A DNA stretch of 64,000 nt from Mobula hypostoma (Eukaryota): the NCBI RefSeq assembly GCF_963921235.1, contig NC_086101.1, positions 31,806,001 through 31,870,000 on the forward strand. The letters are read 5' to 3'. The translations under genes were made by a program, and so were the position numbers. Below are positions 1-31,099 of this stretch, one piece after another; position 1 is the first letter of the stretch, and every line of letters begins with the position of its first letter. The notes below the pieces were generated by a model. That model did no database searches. It saw only the letters and a program-made list of their open reading frames with translations, and was not told the DNA's origin.

Positions 1-1629
1 AGCCTGATGGCTGGTGTCGATGATGTGCTGTTCTTTCTCCAGAATCTCTGACCACGACAGACCAGTTCTATCCTACATCTTTCCAACAACTCCGCATTGC
101 AATGTCGGCCGACCCAAAACCTGCGGCTGAGAAACAATCCCCATCAGTGACTGGGTCAGAGCTGTACGTGCCAGGAACACTCAGCAGATCGGTCAGCATC
201 TGCAGAAAGAGAAACAGTTGATGGTTCTGGTGCAAGACCTTTGTCAGATCGGACGCTAGTTGGAGATCCTCAATGTGTGGAAAGTTGTGGGGAGGGATGT
301 CGTGTAAAATTGTGTTCCGTCACGGAGCGTGGTAAAACTCCTCGGGGTATATCAATATATAAATATGGCTTGGAGCAAATTGCGTTTTGAGACTCTGGGG
401 AACCCGAACAGAGGCGGTGGATGAGCGATGATCAGATTTAAGGCCAATTGGCCTGATTCTCTACGCCTCGTATTTACAGTCCCTCCACCTCAGTCCACCC
501 TCCTCTCTATTTTTTATTCATTTAGAACTATAACCCATCTGCCTTTACCCCCTAACTCCCTAATATTCCCCCTCCCTCCAACCCTTCCCCTCCCCTAGCT
601 TAACCTGTCGGTAATCCTTAACCTCTCCTCAGTTCACCACTTACTTCGCCTCAACCCTCCCCTTCTCTTCTTTATACTGGAGATTTTCGCTCTTCACTCG
701 GTCCTGATGCCGGCCTGATCCTGAAGGTCTACAAATTGCTGAACAATCACCCATTCCCCCCCCCCGCCCCCACCTGTACTGCTCAATCCGAATCCGAATC
801 GGAATTAGAATCAAATGCAAGTTTAATATCACTGGTATATGTCATCAAATGCCTTGTTTTGCGACAGCAGTACGGTGCAATACTTTATAAAAACTATGAA
901 TTACTTTAAAGAATACAGATTGTGGGATGATGCTGCGGATATACGGGACGGATTTGATTGGGGCAGAGTGGGATAGGGTGGGGGGGGGGATCTCTCGCCG
1001 CCGGCCAGGCGGAGTCTTTGCGCCTGTTGGTGAGGCGTGGGGATGAGGGATACCGCCGGATACCGCTGGGCAGTGTGCTCCGGAAACCCCTACCCCATTG
1101 TGCCCATTGAGTCGTTCTGCGGTTTCTGCAGCACATTGCGTGCTGACCTCTGCCTTCTGGTCAAAGGTGTTGGCGAGGATAGCGAACATTGTGCCAAAGA
1201 CCAAAAAAAAACATAGAACGCTGGGTTAATTCAGCAGGTCAGTCCGTTGACCTCAACTAGGCCTAAAAACGTCCCACTCCCCACGTGGTCAAAATAAAAC
1301 TAAATAACGTGGTCTAAAATACCCTAACCATCGAAGTGGCGCGTCTTTCATTATCTTGGTCCATGGGGAGAAAACACATGCCGGGTGATCGACCCTGGCT
1401 CGGTCGCCTGGGCGAGCGTGCCTAATGTTCGAAGACCCGAGGCTGCTACCAGGATAATGGAGCCAAGTGGTTTTGGGCCAGGTTAATGAAAGACGTGGTG
1501 CAGGTCGAAGTGCCAGGGTTAAGTGACACAGAATTGCCTGTAATTAGATCTCAGTCCGTTCTTCAGCATTTGAGAACACGAAACACAGTTTACTTCTAAA
1601 AACCACGTTCTATTTTTTGTTTACAAGGT

Positions 1630-1757
1630 CAGCGGAGAGCGCGAACGCAGTCCCCCACTACCACAAATTCCGCAGTCGAGTATCCCGCATTTGGGGACAT
1701 CGCAGGCGTCAGCACACCCGGAGTGCAATGGGATAGCCTCGTCCTGGAACCTCGGCC
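1630..1757 (-). pseudogene. RNU1: U1 snRNA 3' portion (nt 37 to end), interrupted by Tx1 insertion
   Basis: Reverse complement reads GGCCGAGGTTCCAGGACGAGGCTATCCCATTGCACTCC...AATTTGTGGTAGTGGGGGACTGCGTTCGCGCTCTCCGCTG. It is identical to nt 37-163 of the intact copy at 21411 except for a 1-nt indel. U1A loop, SL3, Sm site and SL4 are present. The retroelement poly(A) abuts it directly. Confidence 0.96.
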
Positions 1758-2133
1758 TTTTTTTCCAAAAATACTTTATTCAGAAATATTACAAAATAAA
1801 AATAATTACATACAAGAAAAGAAAACCATTCGTTGACTGTAAGTCCTTATTCAATACAGTTATTAACAATAAAATTTTGCGTTGACTCTCTGTTCATTTA
1901 CAAATGAAAGATGTTTACAGTAAATCATGCGTTTACTCTCAACCCTTGGTCAAGAGTTAAAACTTATTAACAATCAAAATTTTCAACAATAAAGGCAGGC
2001 AATGGCTGTAATATTTTCCCAAATTAACAATTCCACCCACTCCTTGGGCACCATGCTGATTATCTGTCCACACCGCTGATGAGGGTAGGTCTCCTCCCCA
2101 CCCAACCTCTCCCCCTCCTACGGGTGATGAACG

Positions 2134-5100
2134 TTAAACTGTGGTCCTTCCCCACCGGGCCCTTGCGGTGGCTGCACCGAGTTTCAGTGCGTCCCTCAGC
2201 ACGTACTCCTGCAGCCGAGAATGTGCCAGTCGGCAGCATTCTCCCACGGACATCTCCATGTGCTGGTAGATCATCAAGTTTCGGGCCGACCAAAGAGCGT
2301 CTTTCACCGAGTTGATGATCTGCCAGCAGCACCGGATGTTTGTCTCCGTGTGCTTCCCCGGGTACCGCCCGTAGATCAGAGAGTCCTCTGTTACGCAGCT
2401 GCTGGGCACGAATCTTAGTACTGTCCCTTCCATTCTCTTCCACACCTTCTTTGCGAACCCACAGTGTGCAAAGAGGTGGGTCACAGACTCCACCCCATTA
2501 CATTCCTCCCGTGGGCAGTGGGGTGCGGAGACGACGTTCCGGGCGTACAGGAGGGCTCTGACTGGGAGGGCCCCTCTCACCGCCAGCCAGGCGAGGTCTT
2601 GGTGCCTGTTGGTGAGATCTGGCGATGAGGCATTTTGCCAGATGAACTGGACGGTCTGCTCAGGGAACCACCCCACTGTGTCCATCTCGTCCTTCTCCTG
2701 CAGTGCCTGCAGGACATTACATGCCGACCACTGTCTAATTGCCCTGTGGTCAAATGCGTTGGTCTTGAAGAATTTTTCTACGAAGGACAGGTAAGGGGGC
2801 AACGACCAGCTGACAGCGGTGTTACGCGGGAAAGAAGCCAGACCCATCCTTCGTAGCCAGGGCGACAGGTAAAACCTAGGCACATAGTAGTACTTTGTGC
2901 CCACGTATCTGGGATCCACGCACAACCTGATGCAGCCACACACGAAGCTGGCCATCAGGGTGAGGGCGAAGTTCTTGCCCCCATTGTCCAGGGACTTGTG
3001 CATGGCGGTCCGTCTCACCCGCTCCATCTTGGATCCCCAGACGAATCTGAAGACAGCCCGGGTGATTTCCGAGCTGTAGGAGCGGGGGACGGGCCACACC
3101 TGCGCCAAGTACAGCAGCCCTGAGAGCACCTCACACCTGATGACCAGGTTCTTGCCCGTTATCAACAGGGAGCGCCCTCCCCACAGTCCCAGTTTCTGTT
3201 TCACCTTGGCAGTCCGCTCCTGCCAGTTCTTGTTGATCGCCTCAGTCCCTCCGAACCAGATCCCCAACACCTTCACGTGGTCAGATCTGATGGTGAAGGG
3301 GACGCTGGATCGGTCGGGCCAGTTGCCGAAGAGCATGGCTTCGCTCTTCGTGCGGTTGACCCTGGCCCCCGACGCTAGCTCGAACTGTTCGCAGATGCCA
3401 ATCAACCTGCGAACTGACCTCGGATCAGAGCAGAAGACGGTGACGTCATCCATGTACAGGGAGGTTTTCACTTGGGTCCCTCCACTGCCTGGCAGCGTCA
3501 CCCGTCTTATGCCCTCATCCCTCCTGATGGCTTCTGCAAAGGGTTCTATGCAGCAGACAAACAAGACAGGGGAGAGGGGACAGCCCTGCCTGACTCCAGA
3601 CCTGATGGGGAAGCTGTCTGTTTCCCACCCGTTGACCTGGACTGCACTACGGATGTCTGTGTAGAGCAGTCTGATCCAATTCCGGATTCCCTCCCCAAAT
3701 CCCATTTTGGAGAGCACGTCCGCCATGTACGAGTGCGATATCCTGTCGAAGGCTTTCTCCTGGTCCAAGCTGACCAGGCAGGCGTCCACCCCCCTGTCCT
3801 GCACGTAGGCGATGGTGTCCCTCAGCAGCGTGAGGCTGTCTGAGATCTTCCTGCCTGGTACAGCACAGGTTTGGTCTGGGTGGATCACCTGTCCCAGAGC
3901 AGACTTGACCCTGTTGGCGATAGCCTTGGACAGGATCTTGTAATCCATATTCAGGAGAGAGATGGGTCTGCAATTCCAAATGTCCTCCCTTTCCCCCTTC
4001 TGCTTGTAGATGAGGGTGATGATGCCCCTCCTCATGGACTCAGACATACTGCCGGCCAGAAGCATAGCGTTGTACACTTCCAGCAGGTCTGGGCCCATCC
4101 AGTTCCACAGAGCCGAGTACAACTCAGCCGGTAAGCCGTCGCTTCCGGGAGTCTTACCCGACCCAAAGGAACGGATGGAGCCTGTCAGCTCGTCCAGGGT
4201 CAGTGGCTGATCCAGACTCTCCCGCTTGCCGTCGTCTAAGACCTGCGTGATAGACGACAGGAAGTTGCGGGAGGCTGTGGATTCTGTGGCCTTTTCGTCG
4301 TACAGACCGGCATAGAAGGACTTGCAGATCCTCAGTATGTCGGTCTGCGAGGACGCGACTGAGCCGTCCTCTTCCTTAAGGTTGTGGATCACAGAGCTCC
4401 CCCTGTGCACCTTTTGGAAGAAGAAGCGTGAGCACGTCTCGTCCTGCTCCACGGTTTGGACCCTTGATCGGAAGATGATCTTGGAGGATTCGGCGGCGAG
4501 GTTATGGGCTTGCCGGCCCCTTCACCTCTCGCAATTCCTCCCTGACATCCACCCCCTTCGACTGCAGGAGGAGAAGTTGCTGCAACTCTGTCTGGAGTTT
4601 ACGCAGTTCCCTCTGCTCCTGCCTTGCCTTCTGGATACCCTTGCGAATGAAGAACCTCTTAATGTTCTCCCTGGTGGCTTCCCACCAGTGAACCGGGGAA
4701 TCAAAGACGGCTTTCAAGGTTCTCCAACCTGTGTACTCCCTCTCTAGTTCCTCGATGTTCTCTGGGGTCAGCAGCTTAACATTCAGCTTCCAAGTCCCCC
4801 TGCCTGCCTTCTGGTCCTCCCGTAAGCGACAGGTGGCTCTCAGAAGGCAGTGGTCAGAGAAAGACACCGGCGTGACGTCGGTGGACCTGACCGTGAGGGA
4901 CTCAGACAGGAAGAGGAAGTCGATCCGGGAGCGGGCTGAGCCGTCCGATCATGTCCAGGTGGCTTGCGGCTGTGCTCCACCTGTGGGGGTGCCAAAGGCA
5001 TCGCGCAGCTTGGCAGTCTTTACTATTTCCCTCAGGAGTCTGGAGGTACTGTCCAGCCTGCCGGGCCCTCCAGCCGCATCAATGGTGCAGTTGAAGTCTC

Positions 5101-5516
5101 CGGCCAGAACGACCGGCTGGGACGTCACCAGCAGCTGTGGGAGCCGCTCGAGGTCGGCCAGCCGCTCGCTCCGCACGGGGTAGGCGGACACGTTGATCAG
5201 CCGGAGCGGAGTGCCCCGGTATTTGACGTCTGCTACCAGGAGGCGCCCCGCAACCACCTCTTTAACTTGGGTGATTGAGAAGTTGCCTCCCCGCAGCAGA
5301 ACCCCCAGGCCAGAAGCGCGACCATCGTTGCCCCCCGACCACACCGACAAACCCTGGGACCACCACCGTGACCACCGTCGATAACTCCTGAGGTGCGGCA
5401 GACCGCACTCCTGCAGGAAGGTCACGTCGGCGTTCACGGTGTTCAAGTACCGAAGCGCGCTGACGCAACGTCCAGTACTTTTCACGAACGTTTAAGGACG
5501 CCATTTTAAGGTCCAT
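2134..5516 (-). pseudogene. Tx1 ORF2 (AP endonuclease, reverse transcriptase, C-terminal CCHC), disrupted
   Basis: ORF pieces 5516 (MDLKMASLNV), 4949-5485 (FLQE, GDFN), 4502-4867 (SDH) and 2134-4452 (PGSDG, QGCPLSP, YMDD, CPREEC..HLFAHC). Frameshifts near 5485 and 4500 and an in-frame TGA at 4949. Confidence 0.93.
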
Positions 5517-5523
5517 CACCTTT

Positions 5524-7185
5524 TTATAAATCCTCGTTCTCTTCTTCCCCGTCTGGAGGCCTCATACCCACAGTCTTGGTGAAGTCTTCCACCTGCTGAG
5601 GGTTCAGGTACTGCTGGTACTCCCCGCCAGGGAGGGGCGCCACCGGTTCGGCACCAAATGGAACCTCCGGGGGCGCCCCTCCATCTGGCCGCAGACCACC
5701 AGAAGTAATACTGCTCCCGGATTCCCGGACCTGAGAGACTCTGCTGATCCCCCCATCCTGCGACTGGGGGGTGGCTAGCAGACCTTCACTCTTCCCCTGA
5801 CTCTCCTCTGCCCGATTAACCCGCCTCTTCCTCTGTCGGGGTTTCTGGCCACCCCCACCGCCCTCCTCCTCCGAGGAAGACAGGTGCTCAGAGGACGAGT
5901 GATGCTCAACCTCTCTCTTTTTAGAGCTCCCCAATTTGTCCGCCCTTTGTCTTTTTGGCGGCATCTTTAGGGTCTTTTTCCGTTTCGTGACCACCCTCCA
6001 CTTTTCCTCTTCCCCCTCGGCCCTCCCCTCTTCCATTGACTCCTCCTCATCAAGCGGGGGGTCTTGGGTGTCCTGCAAGGTGGAGGGGGCGCTCAGGGTG
6101 GGCTCTTGTCCCTCCATCGCAACCTGCGTCTCCTCTACAGAGACGGCGGGCACTTCCACTCCAGCTGGGGCTATCCCGATGTCATCACTACCCCTGGCCA
6201 CCTGTGCATAGGAGCCCACCCGTTTCGGACAGGTCCTATAAAGGTGGCCCGCCTGCCCACAGAGGTTGCAGGATTTGGCCTCCGTACAGTCTTTGGTAAG
6301 GTGACCCTCCACCTTGCAGTTTCTGCACACCACAGCCTTACACTGGGCCGCGATGTGCCCTGCCTTGCCGCAGTTTCGGCACAGTTTCTGTTGCCCGGCG
6401 TAAACCAGGTAGCCCCGGTTCCCTCCGATCGCAAAGACTGAGGGTGGGTGGATGACAAAGCCATTGGTGTCCGTCCTTAACTTAACCCTGACCTGCCGTT
6501 TAGATGTCCAAACCCCCAGAATGTCGTCAACGTCCTCACACCCCCACACTCTCTCTGCATAACGTGCTAGGAAAGTGGGAACGTCGACGACAGGTACATA
6601 GGGATTAAACATGTGTACCGTAACTGTTCTCTCCTGCGACCCCTCGGCAAAGAGAGGTTGCACTTTAAATAGCGACAGCGGCGCCTCGCTCCCCTTCTTG
6701 GAGAAACACTGGCGCATTTTCCGCCACCCCTCGGCACGCCGGAAGGTGACATCATAGTAACTCGGGAAATCCTGCACACAGTACAGATCATCTACCTTAA
6801 AGCCGCAGCAATCGAAAAGCACCTTACGAATGAAGGTAATCCGATTGAAGCCGTTGCCATCCTTCAGATCCTTGACAGTCATTCGCACAGTGTTCTTGAT
6901 ACCAGCTCCACGAGCGGAAGGGCTTGTCTCCCCCGACTTCCTTCTCGGTGCGCTGGACTCCCCAGCTCTCTTCGTCGATTCGCTGCTCTCCGCAGCTCTC
7001 TTCCCCGAATCGGGGTTCTCCTCAGCTCTTTCCCCGGAATCGGGGTTCTTTTCAGCTCTCTTCCCCGATTCACTGGTCTCCGCAACTCTCTGCACCGATT
7101 GGCTGGACTTTCCAGCCGCCTTCTTCGCTACTACTCCGGATTCTTCAGTCTGAACCATTGATGCTTTGGACGCTACAGCTCTCAT
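5524..7185 (-). CDS. Tx1 ORF1 gag-like RNA-binding protein, 553 aa, intact
   Basis: Open ORF from a true ATG. Three CX2CX4HX4C knuckles (CRNCGKAGHIAAQC, CRNCKVEGHLTKDC, CNLCGQAGHLYRTC), an RRM-like region and a basic/acidic C-terminus. It ends 7 nt before the ORF2 ATG. Confidence 0.93.
   Translation of the reverse strand: MRAVASKASMVQTEESGVVAKKAAGKSSQSVQRVAETSESGKRAEKNPDSGERAEENPDSGKRAAESSESTKRAGESSAPRRKSGETSPSARGAGIKNTVRMTVKDLKDGNGFNRITFIRKVLFDCCGFKVDDLYCVQDFPSYYDVTFRRAEGWRKMRQCFSKKGSEAPLSLFKVQPLFAEGSQERTVTVHMFNPYVPVVDVPTFLARYAERVWGCEDVDDILGVWTSKRQVRVKLRTDTNGFVIHPPSVFAIGGNRGYLVYAGQQKLCRNCGKAGHIAAQCKAVVCRNCKVEGHLTKDCTEAKSCNLCGQAGHLYRTCPKRVGSYAQVARGSDDIGIAPAGVEVPAVSVEETQVAMEGQEPTLSAPSTLQDTQDPPLDEEESMEEGRAEGEEEKWRVVTKRKKTLKMPPKRQRADKLGSSKKREVEHHSSSEHLSSSEEEGGGGGQKPRQRKRRVNRAEESQGKSEGLLATPQSQDGGISRVSQVRESGSSITSGGLRPDGGAPPEVPFGAEPVAPLPGGEYQQYLNPQQVEDFTKTVGMRPPDGEEENEDL
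6960..7140 (-). repeat. 30-bp coding tandem repeat in ORF1 N-terminus (5-6 copies)
   Basis: cagctctc or variants at 6963, 6993, 7023, 7053, 7083 and 7113; encodes SGKRAEKNPD/SGERAEENPD/SGKRAAESSE units. Confidence 0.9.
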
Positions 7186-7395
7186 CTCCGATCCACTGCC
7201 GCCCTCAGCCCTCAGCCCTCTCCTTTAAATCGCTGGTCTTCCCAGCACTGCTTCCCGATGTACTGGTCTTACCAGCCATCCAACTTCTTGCTCAGGCACC
7301 GCACGTTCGGCAGTGCCCTCACCGCCCGATCCTCTCTCCGCGAAGGATCTCTCCGTTCCGAGAACGGCAGAGACCGCTACGTTCTTAGAAGAACG

Positions 7396-7445
7396 ATGGG
7401 ATAGTCTCGTCCTGGGAGAACAGCCTTCGCGATCACCGTCTCCCC
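7396..7445 (-). other. U1 snRNA-derived head (stem-loop I plus start of SL2) at the 5' end of Tx1 copy A
   Basis: Minus strand reads GGGGAGACGGTGATCGCGAAGGCTGTTCTCCCAGGACGAGACTATCCCAT, which aligns to U1 nt about 15-66. It folds as GGGAGA-CGGT[GATCGCGAAG]GCTG-T-TCTCCC. Confidence 0.88.
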
Positions 7446-7462
7446 GTCCTGGAACCTCGGTC
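7446..7462 (-). repeat. Target-site duplication of copy A (U1 nt 37-53)
   Basis: GACCGAGGTTCCAGGAC matches GGCCGAGGTTCCAGGAC at 1757-1741 with one mismatch. Confidence 0.9.
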
Positions 7463-7589
7463 TTTTTTTTCAAAAATACTTTATTCAGAAATATTACAAA
7501 ATAAAAAGAATTACATACAAGAAAAGAAAACCATTCGTTGACTGTAAGTCCTTATTCAATACAGTTATTAACAATAAAAATTTTGCGTT
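7463..7589 (-). mobile_element. Tx1 copy B, severely 5'-truncated (about 125 bp of 3' end plus poly A)
   Basis: Near-identical to the copy A 3' terminus (1765-1885). Preceded on the minus strand by a second U1 TSD, GGCCGAGGTT(C), at 7590-7600. Confidence 0.9.
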
Positions 7590-7600
7590 GAACCTCGGCC

Positions 7601-8008
7601 TTTTTTATCCAAAAAATATTTTATTCAGAAATATTACAAAATAAAAATAATTACATACAAGAAAAGAAAACCATTCGTTCACTGTGAGTCCTTATTCAAT
7701 AGTTATTAACAATAAAAATTTTGCATTGACTCTCTGTTCATTTACAAATGAAAGATGTTTACAGTAAATCATGCGTTTACTCTCAACCCTTGGTCAAGAG
7801 TTAAGACTTATAACAATAAAAATTTTCAACAATAAAGGCAGGCAATGGCTGTAATACTTTCCCAAATTAACAATTCCACCCACTCCTTGGGCACCATGCT
7901 GATTATCTGTCCACACCGCTGATGAGGGTAGGTCTCCTCCCCACCCAACCTCTCCCCCTCCTACGGGTGATGAACGTTAAACTGTGGTCCCTCCCCACTG
8001 GGCCTTGC
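7601..8008 (-). mobile_element. Tx1 copy C, 5'-truncated (3'UTR plus end of ORF2)
   Basis: Near-identical to 1758-2165. Its poly(A) is followed by U1 nt 37-47. Homology stops at about 8008. Confidence 0.9.
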
Positions 8009-8484
8009 ATATGTTTGAGTTCCTTAATTGTCATGGAGGTGTTAAAAGTCAGACGAACTTCAAGCTGACAGCCGATTTATTTTGATAGTAGTAAAGACAA
8101 TTGTCCCTTAGTTTCACAAGCTTCCATTATGCCTGTCTCACCTGTCTTCTCCGTCCTCGTTGTGTAAAGGGAGACTATGCTTTAGGAAGTCCTATCTGTA
8201 AAAGTCTCATTACAGATGCCTCACTTGTCTGGCCTGAGCTCACACTGCCTCAGTCACCCAGGCCTATCTTGCCTGTAGTAAGCAGAGGTATCTCCGACAG
8301 TCTCACTTAACTATAGCCGCCCCAGACTGTCCTTGCCTGGATGTTGCTTTCGGTCTCACCTTACCACAACGTTCACACTGAATAGTAGGCATCTTTGCTC
8401 CTGGATAAATTCACTCAATGGTAGGGAGGGATTTGGCTCACAGGACCTGCTCTGCAATGTTCCCTCCAATTTCTAATGACCAGT

Positions 8485-10205
8485 TAGTCAGTAGGAAGTC
8501 TATCCGGGGGAGCGGGCTGAGTCGTCCGATCGTGACCAGGTGGCTTGTGGCTGCGCTCCAACTGTGGGGGTGCCAAAGGCGTCGCGCAGCTTGGCTGTCT
8601 TCACCGTTTCCCTCAGGAGTCTAGAGGTACTATCCAGCCTGCCAGTTCGTCCAGCCTGCCGGTTCGTCCAGCCGCATCAATGAAGTCTCCGGCCAGAGCG
8701 ACCGGCCGGGACGGTCAACAGCAGCTGTGGGAGCCGCTCGAGGTCGGCCGGCCGCTCGCTCCGCACGGGGGAGGCGGACACGTTGATCAGCCGGAGCGGA
8801 GTGCCCCGGTATTTGACGTCTGCTCCCAGGAGGGAGCCCCGCAACCACCTCCTTAACTTGGGTGATTGAGAGGCTGCCTCCCCGCAGCAGAATCCCCAGG
8901 TCGGAGGCCCGACAATCATTGTCCCCCGACCACACCGACAAACCCTGGGACCACCTCCGGTAGTTGCCGCACTGTTGGAGGAAGCTGACGTCGGCATTCA
9001 GTGTTCAAGTACTGGAGCGCGCTGACGCAAATGAGAACGTTTAAGGACGTTAGCTTAAGGTCGTCAACCTTTACAGATCCTCGTCCTCCCCCTCGCAGTC
9101 CTGAGCCCTCATGCCCACGGCCTTGGTGAAGTCTTTCCACCTGCTGTGGGTTCAGGTACTGTGGGGAGGCAGTGCCGGCTCTGAACGTGGAGGGTCTCCC
9201 GGGGCTGCCTCTCCTTCTGGCTGCAGGCCGCCAGATGCGCTACTGCTCCCGGTTTCCCGGAGCGGAGCTGAGGGGCTCTGCTGATCTCCATCTCCTGTAT
9301 TTCGGGAGTGGCAGGCAGACTTTCACCGTTCTCTCGACTCTTGCCCACCTCTTCCTCTGCCGCCCACCGCCTTCCTCCTCCGAGTTGGACAGGTGACCAA
9401 AGGATGCTTTTAGATTCCACTGCCGTTTCTCCGTCGGCTGCCTTTTTGGCGGAGCCTTCTGGGCCATTTTGCGGTTAGCAACCACGTTCCATGCTCTTTC
9501 TTCCCCCATCAGTCCCCCCCCCCCATGACCCCTCCTCGTCAAGCAGTGGGTCCCGGGTGTTCTGCAAGGGCGGGGGGCTCAGGGTGGATGCGTCTTCCTC
9601 CGTTGTTTCTGGAGGCGCCTCTTCAGAGGTGACGGGAACCTCCAAACCCGCCGGAGCCTCTTCGATGTCATCACCTCCCCTGGACACCTGTACGTAGGAT
9701 CCCGCACGTTTCGGACAGGCCCTGTACAGGTGGCCCGCCTGCCCGCAGAGGTTGCAGGACCTGGCCTGCGTACAGTCCTTGGCGAGGTTCTTACACACCA
9801 CAGCCTTGCACTGGGATGCGATGTGCCCCGCCTTGCCGCAGTTGCGGCACACCTTGGATTGCCCGGAGTAAACCAGGAAGCCCTGGTTGCCTCCGATTGC
9901 GAGGACTGAGGCTGGGTGGATGTCAGCCGCTGGCATCCACCCTCAGCTTCACCCTGACCTGCCTTTCGCTGCTCCATATTCCTGGATTGTCGTTGACATC
10001 CACACTTTTGCCCACATACCGCGCCAGGAATGTGAGGACGTGAACGACTGGTACATAGGGGTTGAACATTTGTACCGTTACCGTTCCTTCTTGCTGCGTT
10101 GCGTCGGCGAAGAGGGGCTGTGCGACAGCGGCGCCTCGCGTAAATATTGTAATTTCTGCCGGCCTGCGGCATGCGACGTCACTGTAACCGGCGAAATCCT
10201 CCGCC
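8485..10205 (-). mobile_element. Degraded Tx1 copy E (part of ORF1 plus endonuclease region of ORF2)
   Basis: ORF pieces 9475-9936 (CRNCGKAGHIASQC, CNLCGQAGHLYRAC), 9923-10219 and 8677-8997 parallel copy A ORF1/ORF2 with many frameshifts. Confidence 0.9.
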
Positions 10206-10774: not shown

Positions 10775-11425
10775 TTTTTTAAATTTTTTTTCTCCAAAAA
10801 TACTTTATCCAGAAGTATTACAAAATAAAATTATATACATATAAAAAAACATTCGTTGACCCTGAGTCCTTATTCAATAAATAGTTATTTACAATAAAAT
10901 TATGCGTTGACTCTGTTCATATACAAATAAAAGATGTTTACAATAAATCGTTCGTTTACTCTCAACCCTTGGTCATGAGTTAAGACTTTACAATAAAATT
11001 ATCAACAATAAAGGCAGGCGTTGGCCCTAATTTTTTTCCAAATTAACAAATCCACCCACTCCTGGGGCACCATGTTGATTCATCTGACCACACCGCTGAT
11101 GAGGGTTAGTCTCCTCCCCACCCAACCCCTCACACTCTCACGGGTGATTAACCTTAAACTGTGGTCCTTCCCCACCGGGCCTTCGCGGTGGCCGCACCAA
11201 GCTTGAGTGCATCCCTCAGCACGTCCTCCTGCAGACGAGAGTGAGCCCGTCGGCAGCATTCAGTCACGGACATCTCCATGTGCTGGCAGACCACCAAGTT
11301 TCGGGCCGACCAAAGCGCGTCTTTCACCGAACTGATGATCTGCCAGCAGCACCGGATGTTTGTCTCCGTGTGCGTCCCCGGGAACAGCCCGTAGATCAGA
11401 GTCCTCGGCAACGCAGCTGCTGGCG
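10775..11425 (-). mobile_element. Tx1 copy D, 5'-truncated sister subfamily, non-U1 site
   Basis: ORF 11154-11411 matches the ORF2 C-terminus (..ATAKARWGRTTV); the 3'UTR resembles copy A. Flanked by the 8-bp direct repeat TTCTGTAA (10767-10774 and 11426-11433). Confidence 0.88.
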
Positions 11426-21410: not shown

Positions 21411-21573
21411 ATACTTACCTGGCAGAGAACCGTTGGTGATCCGGAAGGCCGAGGTTCCAGGACGAGGCTATCCCATTGCACTCCGGGTGTGCTGACGCCT
21501 GCGATGTCCCCAAATGCGGGATACTCGACTGCGGAATTTGTGGTAGTGGGGGACTGCGTTCGCGCTCTCCCTG
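21411..21573 (+). ncRNA. RNU1: U1 spliceosomal snRNA (variant), full length 163 nt
   Basis: ATACTTACCTGG 5' end, SL1-SL4 all foldable, U1A loop ATTGCACTCC and Sm site AATTTGTGG; colinear with vertebrate U1. Confidence 0.97.
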
Positions 21574-21580
21574 ATCTTCA

Positions 21581-21593
21581 ATTGAAAACTAGA
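21581..21593 (+). terminator. snRNA 3' box-like element
   Basis: ATTGAAAACTAGA, 7 nt after the U1 3' end, resembles GTTYN0-3AAARNNAGA. Confidence 0.55.
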
Positions 21594-29853: not shown

Positions 29854-30290
29854 GACATCTATGTTGTTCGCAGATCATTAACTCAGTGAAAGACGCTCTT
29901 TGGTCAGCCTGAAACTCGTTGATCTGCCAGCACATCGAGATTTCCATGGAAGAAAGCTGCCATCTGACCTAGTCCAGGCTGCAGGAGTACGTATTTGCTG
30001 AGGGACACACTGATGCTTGGGGCAGCCACTGTAAGGGCTGGGTGGGGGAAGGACTGGGTGGGGAAGGACCACAGTGTAAAATTCTTCTTGTGCTGGAGAG
30101 GGAAGGGCTGGGTTGGAGGAGAAAGCCCCTCCGTTACTACTGTAGCAGTGTCCCACCCCAGGGAGCAATGAATGCATTGGAACAGAACAGAAAGCATTGT
30201 CTATGGATGTAAAGAATAAAAACGCATTCAACTGTTTATCCTTGTAAATAATTTATTAAGAATAAAGTTTATTCTGTTTAAAAAAAGTAG
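28750..30290 (+). mobile_element. Degraded Tx1-family ORF2 3' half and 3'UTR, with (CA)n at about 29810-29852
   Basis: LGIWFGG..KVKQKLGL..SITGKTLVIRCEV and QIINSVKDALWSA. AATAAA plus A-run near 30263-30288, followed by non-U1 sequence. Confidence 0.85.
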
Positions 30291-31099
30291 TGTACCACCC
30301 AGAGGACCACATGAGTGACAATGTTGCTATTGGCTTTAAAAAAATATAACTGAGGATTGTCTACTAGTAAGTAAAAAGGTGTTGCAAAGTTTATACTTGT
30401 AAATATTTTTATTCTGAATAAAGTATATTTTTATAAAAATAGAAATTCCCCTCTAAACCCCATTCACTTTATTCAAACCAAATCACTTTTCCAAAGTGAT
30501 TTAACTTTTGAAAAGCAGCATTATATAGTCCAGCTTCTGCCGTGACAGCAGTGACTTGTCACTAAACCCAACCAGAAAGGTAAACACCCAAGTGATAGAT
30601 TTCCCTGTAGAATAAGGGTTCCCAGCCTGGGGTCTGTGATATTGGTCCATGGCATGAGAAAGGTTGGGAACCTTGGCATAGAAAAAGGCCCAGCCAAGGA
30701 TTACACTCTTCCACCCAAGTTTTCTTCATCAACATCCCACCGTCGATCAGATTTCCTGCAGAGGAGGAGGGGAGTGGGAGAGAGATTGATATAGTGAGAC
30801 AAACCCACAGAAACTTCCGTAGTCAAGCTTCCCCCAATACTGACAGTGAAACCCACTGAAACCACCCACGCAACAGTGAGGATAATGTCTCGGCATTCCC
30901 AATTCCCAATATCCACTGTAATGTAACCCGGATATCCTCCCGCTCCCCCACCATCCCATCTAACAGCCTCACCCCATAACTCCCCATCACAACACCCCAC
31001 AACCCCCGCAAGACGGCAGTGGTGTGGAACCCCGGTCACAAACTGCACGAGAACCAGGAACACGATTCCCTGGAATCAAGCGAAGCCACAGCCCGTTCA

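Follow-up and report, generated by a model that had tools for sequence, protein, structure and literature searches.

Target-specific long interspersed nuclear elements (LINEs) serve as models of safe-harbour integration and of the persistence of selfish elements in multicopy genes. In the Tx1 clade many families are target-specific, some of them with heads derived from the U1 or U2 small nuclear RNA (snRNA) (PMC4494074), and the targets include U2, U5, 5S, satellites, microsatellites and transposons (Kojima 2015, PMC4494074). By the criterion of Kojima 2015, a family is target-specific when >20% of its flanks are the same sequence (PMC4494074). According to Kojima & Jurka 2015, the only elements that had been reported to target snRNA genes were Keno and Utopia, both in U2, Dada-U1 and Dada-U6 (PMC4640811). 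Keno is given as a U2 snRNA gene-specific member of the Tx1 clade (Kojima & Fujiwara 2004, as cited in PMC4494074 and PMC4640811), and at the site that Keno and Utopia use in U2 the flank begins at nt 39 (PMC4640811). Here we describe a stack of three copies of a Tx1-like LINE in the manta relative Mobula hypostoma, each followed by U1 snRNA sequence that starts at the same nucleotide. The stack lies in a stretch of 64,000 nucleotides of contig NC_086101.1 (assembly GCF_963921235.1, positions 31,806,001 to 31,870,000 of the forward strand), hereafter the window, and all positions refer to it. The reading that we favour, to which we give about an even chance, is that U1 is a preferred, not an exclusive, target of this Tx1 subfamily.

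Three Tx1 3' ends joined to U1 at one position

The locus is made up of the following features, where ORF is open reading frame, UTR untranslated region, RT reverse transcriptase, APE apurinic/apyrimidinic endonuclease and TSD target-site duplication; the intact U1 gene of the window is given last.

1609-1617, minus strand: snRNA 3'-box-like motif AAAAATAGA, 13-21 nt past the end of the interrupted U1
1630-1757, minus strand: U1 snRNA gene fragment, nt 37-164, the 3' flank of copy A (Rfam and BLAST)
7444-1758, minus strand: copy A, a full-length Tx1-like LINE
1758-2133, minus strand: 3' end of copy A, an A7 tail (1758-1764) and a 369-nt 3'UTR with AATAAA at 1780-1775
2134-5519, minus strand: ORF2 of copy A, its frame broken three or more times in the endonuclease/linker part
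2134-4452, minus strand: open RT and zf-RVT piece of ORF2, 772 aa
4949-5485, minus strand: APE piece of ORF2
5524-7185, minus strand: ORF1 of copy A, intact, 553 aa, with two ZCCHC3-type RNA-binding domains and CCHC zinc knuckles
7186-7393, minus strand: element-specific 5'UTR of copy A, common to another M. hypostoma copy (L001, see below)
7394-7444, minus strand: U1-like 5' head of copy A, about nt 14-68 of another U1 variant, 81% identical to the intact U1 over 42 nt
7445-7462, minus strand: U1 nt 37-54 with G38A, between copies B and A, the upstream copy of the TSD
7463-7591, minus strand: copy B, 5'-truncated, an A8 run (7470-7463) and the terminal 121 nt of the 3'UTR, 99.2% identical to copy A
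7590-7600, minus strand: U1 nt 37-45 between copies C and B, reaching nt 47 if a 2-nt microhomology (TC) is counted
7601-8008, minus strand: copy C, 5'-truncated, an A6 run (7606-7601) and about 400 nt of the element 3' end
21411-21574, plus strand: uninterrupted U1 gene, i.e., the empty target site (Rfam, 142 bits), the same variant as the interrupted U1

Along the minus strand, from 5' to 3', first comes copy C with A6 and U1 nt 37-45/47, next copy B with A8 and U1 nt 37-54, and last copy A with A7 and U1 nt 37-164. Each of the three copies thus has an A-run of 6-8 nt and then U1 from nt 37 onward, with U1 in the sense orientation at all three junctions. When the intact U1 was compared with the window by BLAST, its nt 35-160 matched 1759-1634, nt 39-54 matched 7460-7445 and nt 35-47 matched 7602-7590, always with 100% identity. 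Because nt 35-36 of U1 are AA, the placement of the junction is ambiguous across nt 34-37. The short stretches of U1 that separate one copy from the next are TSDs, and the stack has the form of tandem insertions with TSDs in between, C-U1(37-47)-B-U1(37-54)-A, an arrangement that is not diagnostic by itself. Copy B is 99.2% like copy A but 95.7% like copy C, and for this reason an origin by tandem duplication of the end of copy C was rejected. The 3'UTR of copy C is 98.1% identical to that of copy A, and the 5' flank of copy C (8009 onward) is not U1.

The DNA into which the first copy inserted seems to have been a gene. The 3'-box-like motif stands behind the interrupted U1, and motifs of the AAAAATAGA type have 30 occurrences in 128 kb, which gives a chance P of ~0.006 within 25 nt. 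Behind the intact U1 the same type of motif is found at 21585-21593, and an octamer-like ATGCAAAG is located ~190 bp upstream. The 3' box behind the interrupted U1 points to a real U1 gene as the probable target of the founder and makes a reverse-transcribed (retro-copied) snRNA an unlikely source of the U1 3' part. Outside the gene, the interrupted and intact loci share no flanking homology; conserved flanks were looked for at both, and none were found past the gene ends. Rfam also matches U1 at 1630-1789 (minus strand), where the full-length alignment is forced. The similarity of the element tail to U1 nt 1-36 was matched by 1834 of 2000 shuffles, and the idea that the tail mimics this part of U1, suggested by the cmscan alignment, was discarded as not significant.

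The element is ~5.7 kb long and has two ORFs, a short A-run as tail and a U1-derived 5' head. In Pfam, ORF2 has Exo_endo_phos (the N-terminal APE endonuclease), RVT_1 and zf-RVT (the C-terminal zinc-binding domain), which is the Tx1 layout, and ORF1 has RBD_ZCCHC3_1st, RBD_ZCCHC3_2nd and zf-CCHC and is not of the L1 Transposase_22 type. The RT piece scored 416 bits (42% identity) against a zebrafish protein named “transposon TX1 149 kDa” at NCBI, versus 225 bits against human L1 ORF2p. The closest protein matches came from Mobula (92% and 89% identity), and the protein atlas gave no informative name for the proteins of the element. Judging from its predicted proteins, we accept the element as an L1/Tx1-group LINE of the Tx1 type, the RT comparison consisting of pairwise scores only. 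A preliminary description of this DNA had already assigned the element to Tx1, which the domains of both ORFs and the RT identity support. It had also located the three junctions, their sense orientation and the empty U1 at 21411, all confirmed to the nucleotide by Rfam and BLAST, and a cut at U1 nt 34-37 made ambiguous by the AA, which agrees with our reading of the minus strand.

Possible U1 preference and its alternatives

In favor of U1 as a preferred target, the junctions are exact, the elements lie in the sense orientation, the target has a gene context (the 3' box) and pieces of its flank are duplicated. By analogy, the +37 position parallels that of Keno and Utopia in U2, and a Tx1 relative next to a U3 gene (see below) may be counted as further support. 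With a few thousand copies and ~10 kb of U1 DNA, we estimate that chance would put ~0.01-0.05 Tx1 hits inside any U1 gene genome-wide. We infer that insertions into U1 are more frequent than chance would give, and the cause could be either an endonuclease preference for CCGG/AAGG or homing by read-through RNA. Under this reading, a young mobulid-ray subfamily of Tx1-group LINEs would use target-primed reverse transcription to reach many sites in the genome, and its preferred site would be the 3' edge of loop I in one U1 snRNA gene variant. The bottom strand would be nicked between nt 34 and 37, with the element placed in U1 sense orientation. At this locus the founder entered a U1 gene, and two more copies joined the same junction later. 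Each of them left a TSD that repeats the first 10-18 nt of the flanking U1, so that the site was rebuilt every time.

The same structure can be obtained in two ways. In one, U1 would have been nicked specifically at nt 34-37 on three occasions, leaving TSDs of 10-12 and 18 bp. In the other, the nick would be generic and lie at the 5' boundary of the A-run of a resident copy; each TSD would then combine that A-run with the first 10-18 nt of flank, and the copies would have arrived in the order C, B, A. Insertion at such a boundary is common among poly(A)-primed LINEs. The order C, B, A fits the data because copy C is the most diverged, while A and B are 99.2% alike. The window holds a similar stack without any snRNA gene:

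30261-30445, plus strand: comparison stack at a non-snRNA site, two Tx1 3' ends of older subfamilies, one with A7 (30261-30286) and immediately behind it a 5'-truncated Tx1 3'UTR (30287-30445)

Given this second route and the stack at 30261-30445, the locus proves no more than a single founding insertion into U1. Another head-to-tail stack of this family is found in a different species, where a contig joins the A-run plus AAAGG directly to a copy that is 5'-truncated inside the 3'UTR (joint 2082 to 1758).

Besides the generic route to the stack and its counterpart at 30261-30445, several other observations weigh against a preference for U1. A full-length copy of the subfamily in M. hypostoma (L001, in OY992599.1, at L001:8311-13771), 95% identical to copy A and with an intact ORF1 and one frame break in ORF2, is located at an ordinary non-snRNA site, with a 9-bp TSD (AATAATTGA) and no U1 behind its A8 tail. 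Its 3'UTR is 98.4% identical to that of copy A, i.e., as close as A is to C. Contigs of four related organisms were placed on the copy A/U1 junction, excluding those that match human DNA, and in each of two of these genomes 10-11 contigs continue behind the A-run with non-U1 sequences that differ from one another. The agreement of the loose ends at 1758 is 0.46-0.48. If the TSD is taken as long as possible, the U1 site CCGG/AA resembles the generic sites GGGT/AA and CGCT/AA. All three junctions at the one position belong to a single locus, and upstream of the stack the window contains neither the U1 5' half nor its promoter. Finally, the argument from rarity is weakened by a look-elsewhere effect over the many multicopy gene families.

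These data bear on the explanation in which a dispersed, non-specific subfamily landed once in U1 by chance and then received two re-insertions at the A-run, with no U1 targeting at all. It would account for L001 as a generic insertion of the same subfamily, for the heterogeneous flanks at the poly(A) end in related genomes, for the tail stacking away from snRNA genes and for the order of divergence. The U1 site would be one more instance of the S-rich/AA pattern of generic sites. Among thousands of Tx1 copies, one that lands in a multicopy RNA gene would also be no great surprise, once all the gene families that could have drawn attention are counted. However, a hit specifically in U1 would be rare, the sense orientation and +37 position parallel those of Keno in U2, and the relative L007 adjoins U3. 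We consider this explanation possible, if somewhat unlikely; were it correct, the locus would be a clear, and ordinary, example of LINE tail stacking. Rather less probable to us is a form of RNA-guided homing, in which master copies resident in U1 would be transcribed by read-through, with U1 sequence from nt 37 onward at the end of the RNA. The U1 tail of these transcripts would pair with nicked U1 DNA or serve for template jumps, so that the junction at nt 37 would be inherited from the RNA and not set by the endonuclease. The uniformly short A-run (6-8 nt) of every copy, L001 included, suggests a templated rather than a post-transcriptional tail, and all junctions coincide although the insertion profile is that of a generalist. 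In other site-specific LINEs, specificity is strengthened when the element is transcribed together with its target gene (PMC4494074). On the other hand, L001 has no U1 tail, and staggered nicks explain the flank duplications equally well.

Strict specificity, with essentially all copies of the subfamily in U1 genes, appears very improbable. It would agree with the three junctions in the window, and the exclusion of human-matching contigs may hide some that are U1-flanked, but it is contradicted by L001 and by the 10-11 heterogeneous non-U1 flanks in each of two genomes. A figure of <5% of copies in U1, obtained from word depth (40-92 for the U1 flank versus 350-4800 for the 3'UTR), was discarded as biased, because human-matching contigs had been dropped and U1 nt 113-160 is identical to the human sequence. 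The preliminary description had proposed a family that inserts site-specifically into U1 genes. The insertion into a U1 gene, in sense and at nt 34-37, has held up; the strict specificity has not, given the TSD-flanked L001 at a non-U1 site and the heterogeneous flanks, and the three junctions need not be independent hits, as tail re-insertion leads to the same structure. The target-specific Tx1 families that it listed include none for U1, and we likewise found no retrotransposon targeting U1 in the literature searched, which did not include Repbase.

A wider version of U1 preference is suggested by L007 (L007:4158-4397, the same as L008; Logan SRR5149520/SRR5149418), a Tx1 relative with 45% amino acid identity from an unrelated organism. 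Its end, AATAAA plus A5, directly adjoins a sense-oriented U3 small nucleolar RNA (Rfam, 122 bits; well aligned from ~nt 23-40), behind which there is a perfect snRNA 3' box (GTTTTGAAAAATAGA). This may be a U3-gene-associated Tx1, known from one locus on a contig that is possibly RNA-derived. Tentatively, then, and with more doubt than confidence, a Tx1 lineage might home precisely into the 5'-proximal part of genes of the RNA polymerase II snRNA type (nt 34-37 of U1, and U3 in the relative), with master copies inside these genes borrowing strong external promoters and 3' boxes. If true, it would be the first U1-targeting retrotransposon, and resident master copies would account for the heads of snRNA origin as well as for the many daughter copies that are dispersed and lack a promoter.

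snRNA-derived 5' heads and neighboring copies

Heads derived from U1 or U2 are known in some crocodilian Tx1 families and in SINEU (Kojima 2015, PMC4494074). In copy A, the head folds into a stem-loop I hairpin with the loop GAUCGCGAAG, close to the usual U1-70K loop. In L001, the head (L001:8311-8375) combines U2 nt 1-29 with the same U1-like segment, the two being joined at a GATCA microhomology. This head has U2 nt 1 as its first base, right at the TSD, and for this reason the head of snRNA origin belongs to the unit that transposes. The segment is present both in the window copy and in the TSD-flanked L001, i.e., a 5' terminus from U1/U2 snRNA travels with the element. The stem-loop I of the copy A head is well paired and its loop near consensus, unlike the intact U1 of the window (21421-21475), a variant with a poorly paired stem-loop I and the non-consensus loop GAUCCGGAAG. 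A third U1 variant (…GATCATTAAGGTGGTTCTG…) was seen in contigs of one related genome (loose end at 1747).

The window has other Tx1 sequences near the stack. The DNA next to copy C on its upstream side (8009-8492) is unrelated and repeat-like and lacks the U1 5' half; beyond it is an older, co-oriented Tx1 fragment (8493-10139) that comprises the ORF1-endonuclease part, is 73% identical to copy A and is truncated on its 3' side. Further on, a related copy is found at a non-U1 site, which also speaks against strict U1 specificity:

10787-11423, minus strand: copy E, 3'UTR 89% identical to that of copy A, with a probable imperfect 11-bp TSD, AATT(T)ACAGAA

In the related genomes, the last ~150 nt of ORF2 (2134-2300) have 10-100x the contig word depth of the 3'UTR, and many contigs diverge exactly at the ORF2 stop codon (loose ends at 2138). 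This divergence indicates several abundant Tx1 subfamilies with a common ORF2 end and different 3'UTRs. A search for more copies in metagenome and viral collections gave 0 matches, and a search of sequencing runs with the junction only gave none. Two other candidates (L002 and L003) turned out to be other subfamilies or too short.

Comparison with known target-preferring elements

Keno is a close counterpart in position and type. Like the window element, it is an APE-type LINE of the Tx1 group in a polymerase II snRNA gene, ~37-39 nt from the 5' end of the RNA and with a precise 3' junction. However, the target of Keno is U2 and that of the window element U1, the two sites have no sequence similarity, and many copies of the window subfamily are found outside the target. 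Utopia shares other features, since only some of its copies are snRNA-flanked, its insertions can be in tandem and the upstream gene fragment is often missing (PMC4640811). In contrast, it belongs to the NeSL clade, has a restriction-like endonuclease, targets U2 and shows weak specificity in reptiles (PMC4640811). Dada-U1 of zebrafish also uses U1 genes as a multicopy landing site, with tandem insertions separated by TSDs, but it is a DDE DNA transposon with a different site in U1 (TSD GCGAAT) (PMC3706591).

As for the head, the crocodilian Tx1-Mar families (Tx1-2_Crp, Tx1-4_AMi and Tx1-11_Crp) and SINEU have, like the window element, a 5' end derived from U1 or U2 (PMC4494074). The Tx1-Mar families prefer a Mariner transposon and not snRNA genes, whereas in the window an element that begins with this kind of head is found inside a U1 gene. 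If the U1 preference is true, it would, together with the U1/U2 heads, provide a testable link between the residence of master copies and the transcription of promoterless LINEs. Few retrotransposons are directed to snRNA genes; Keno and Utopia both use U2, and a U1-preferring Tx1 would add a new target. Should the preference hold, the element described here would be a new member, with weak specificity, of the known class of target-preferring Tx1 elements.

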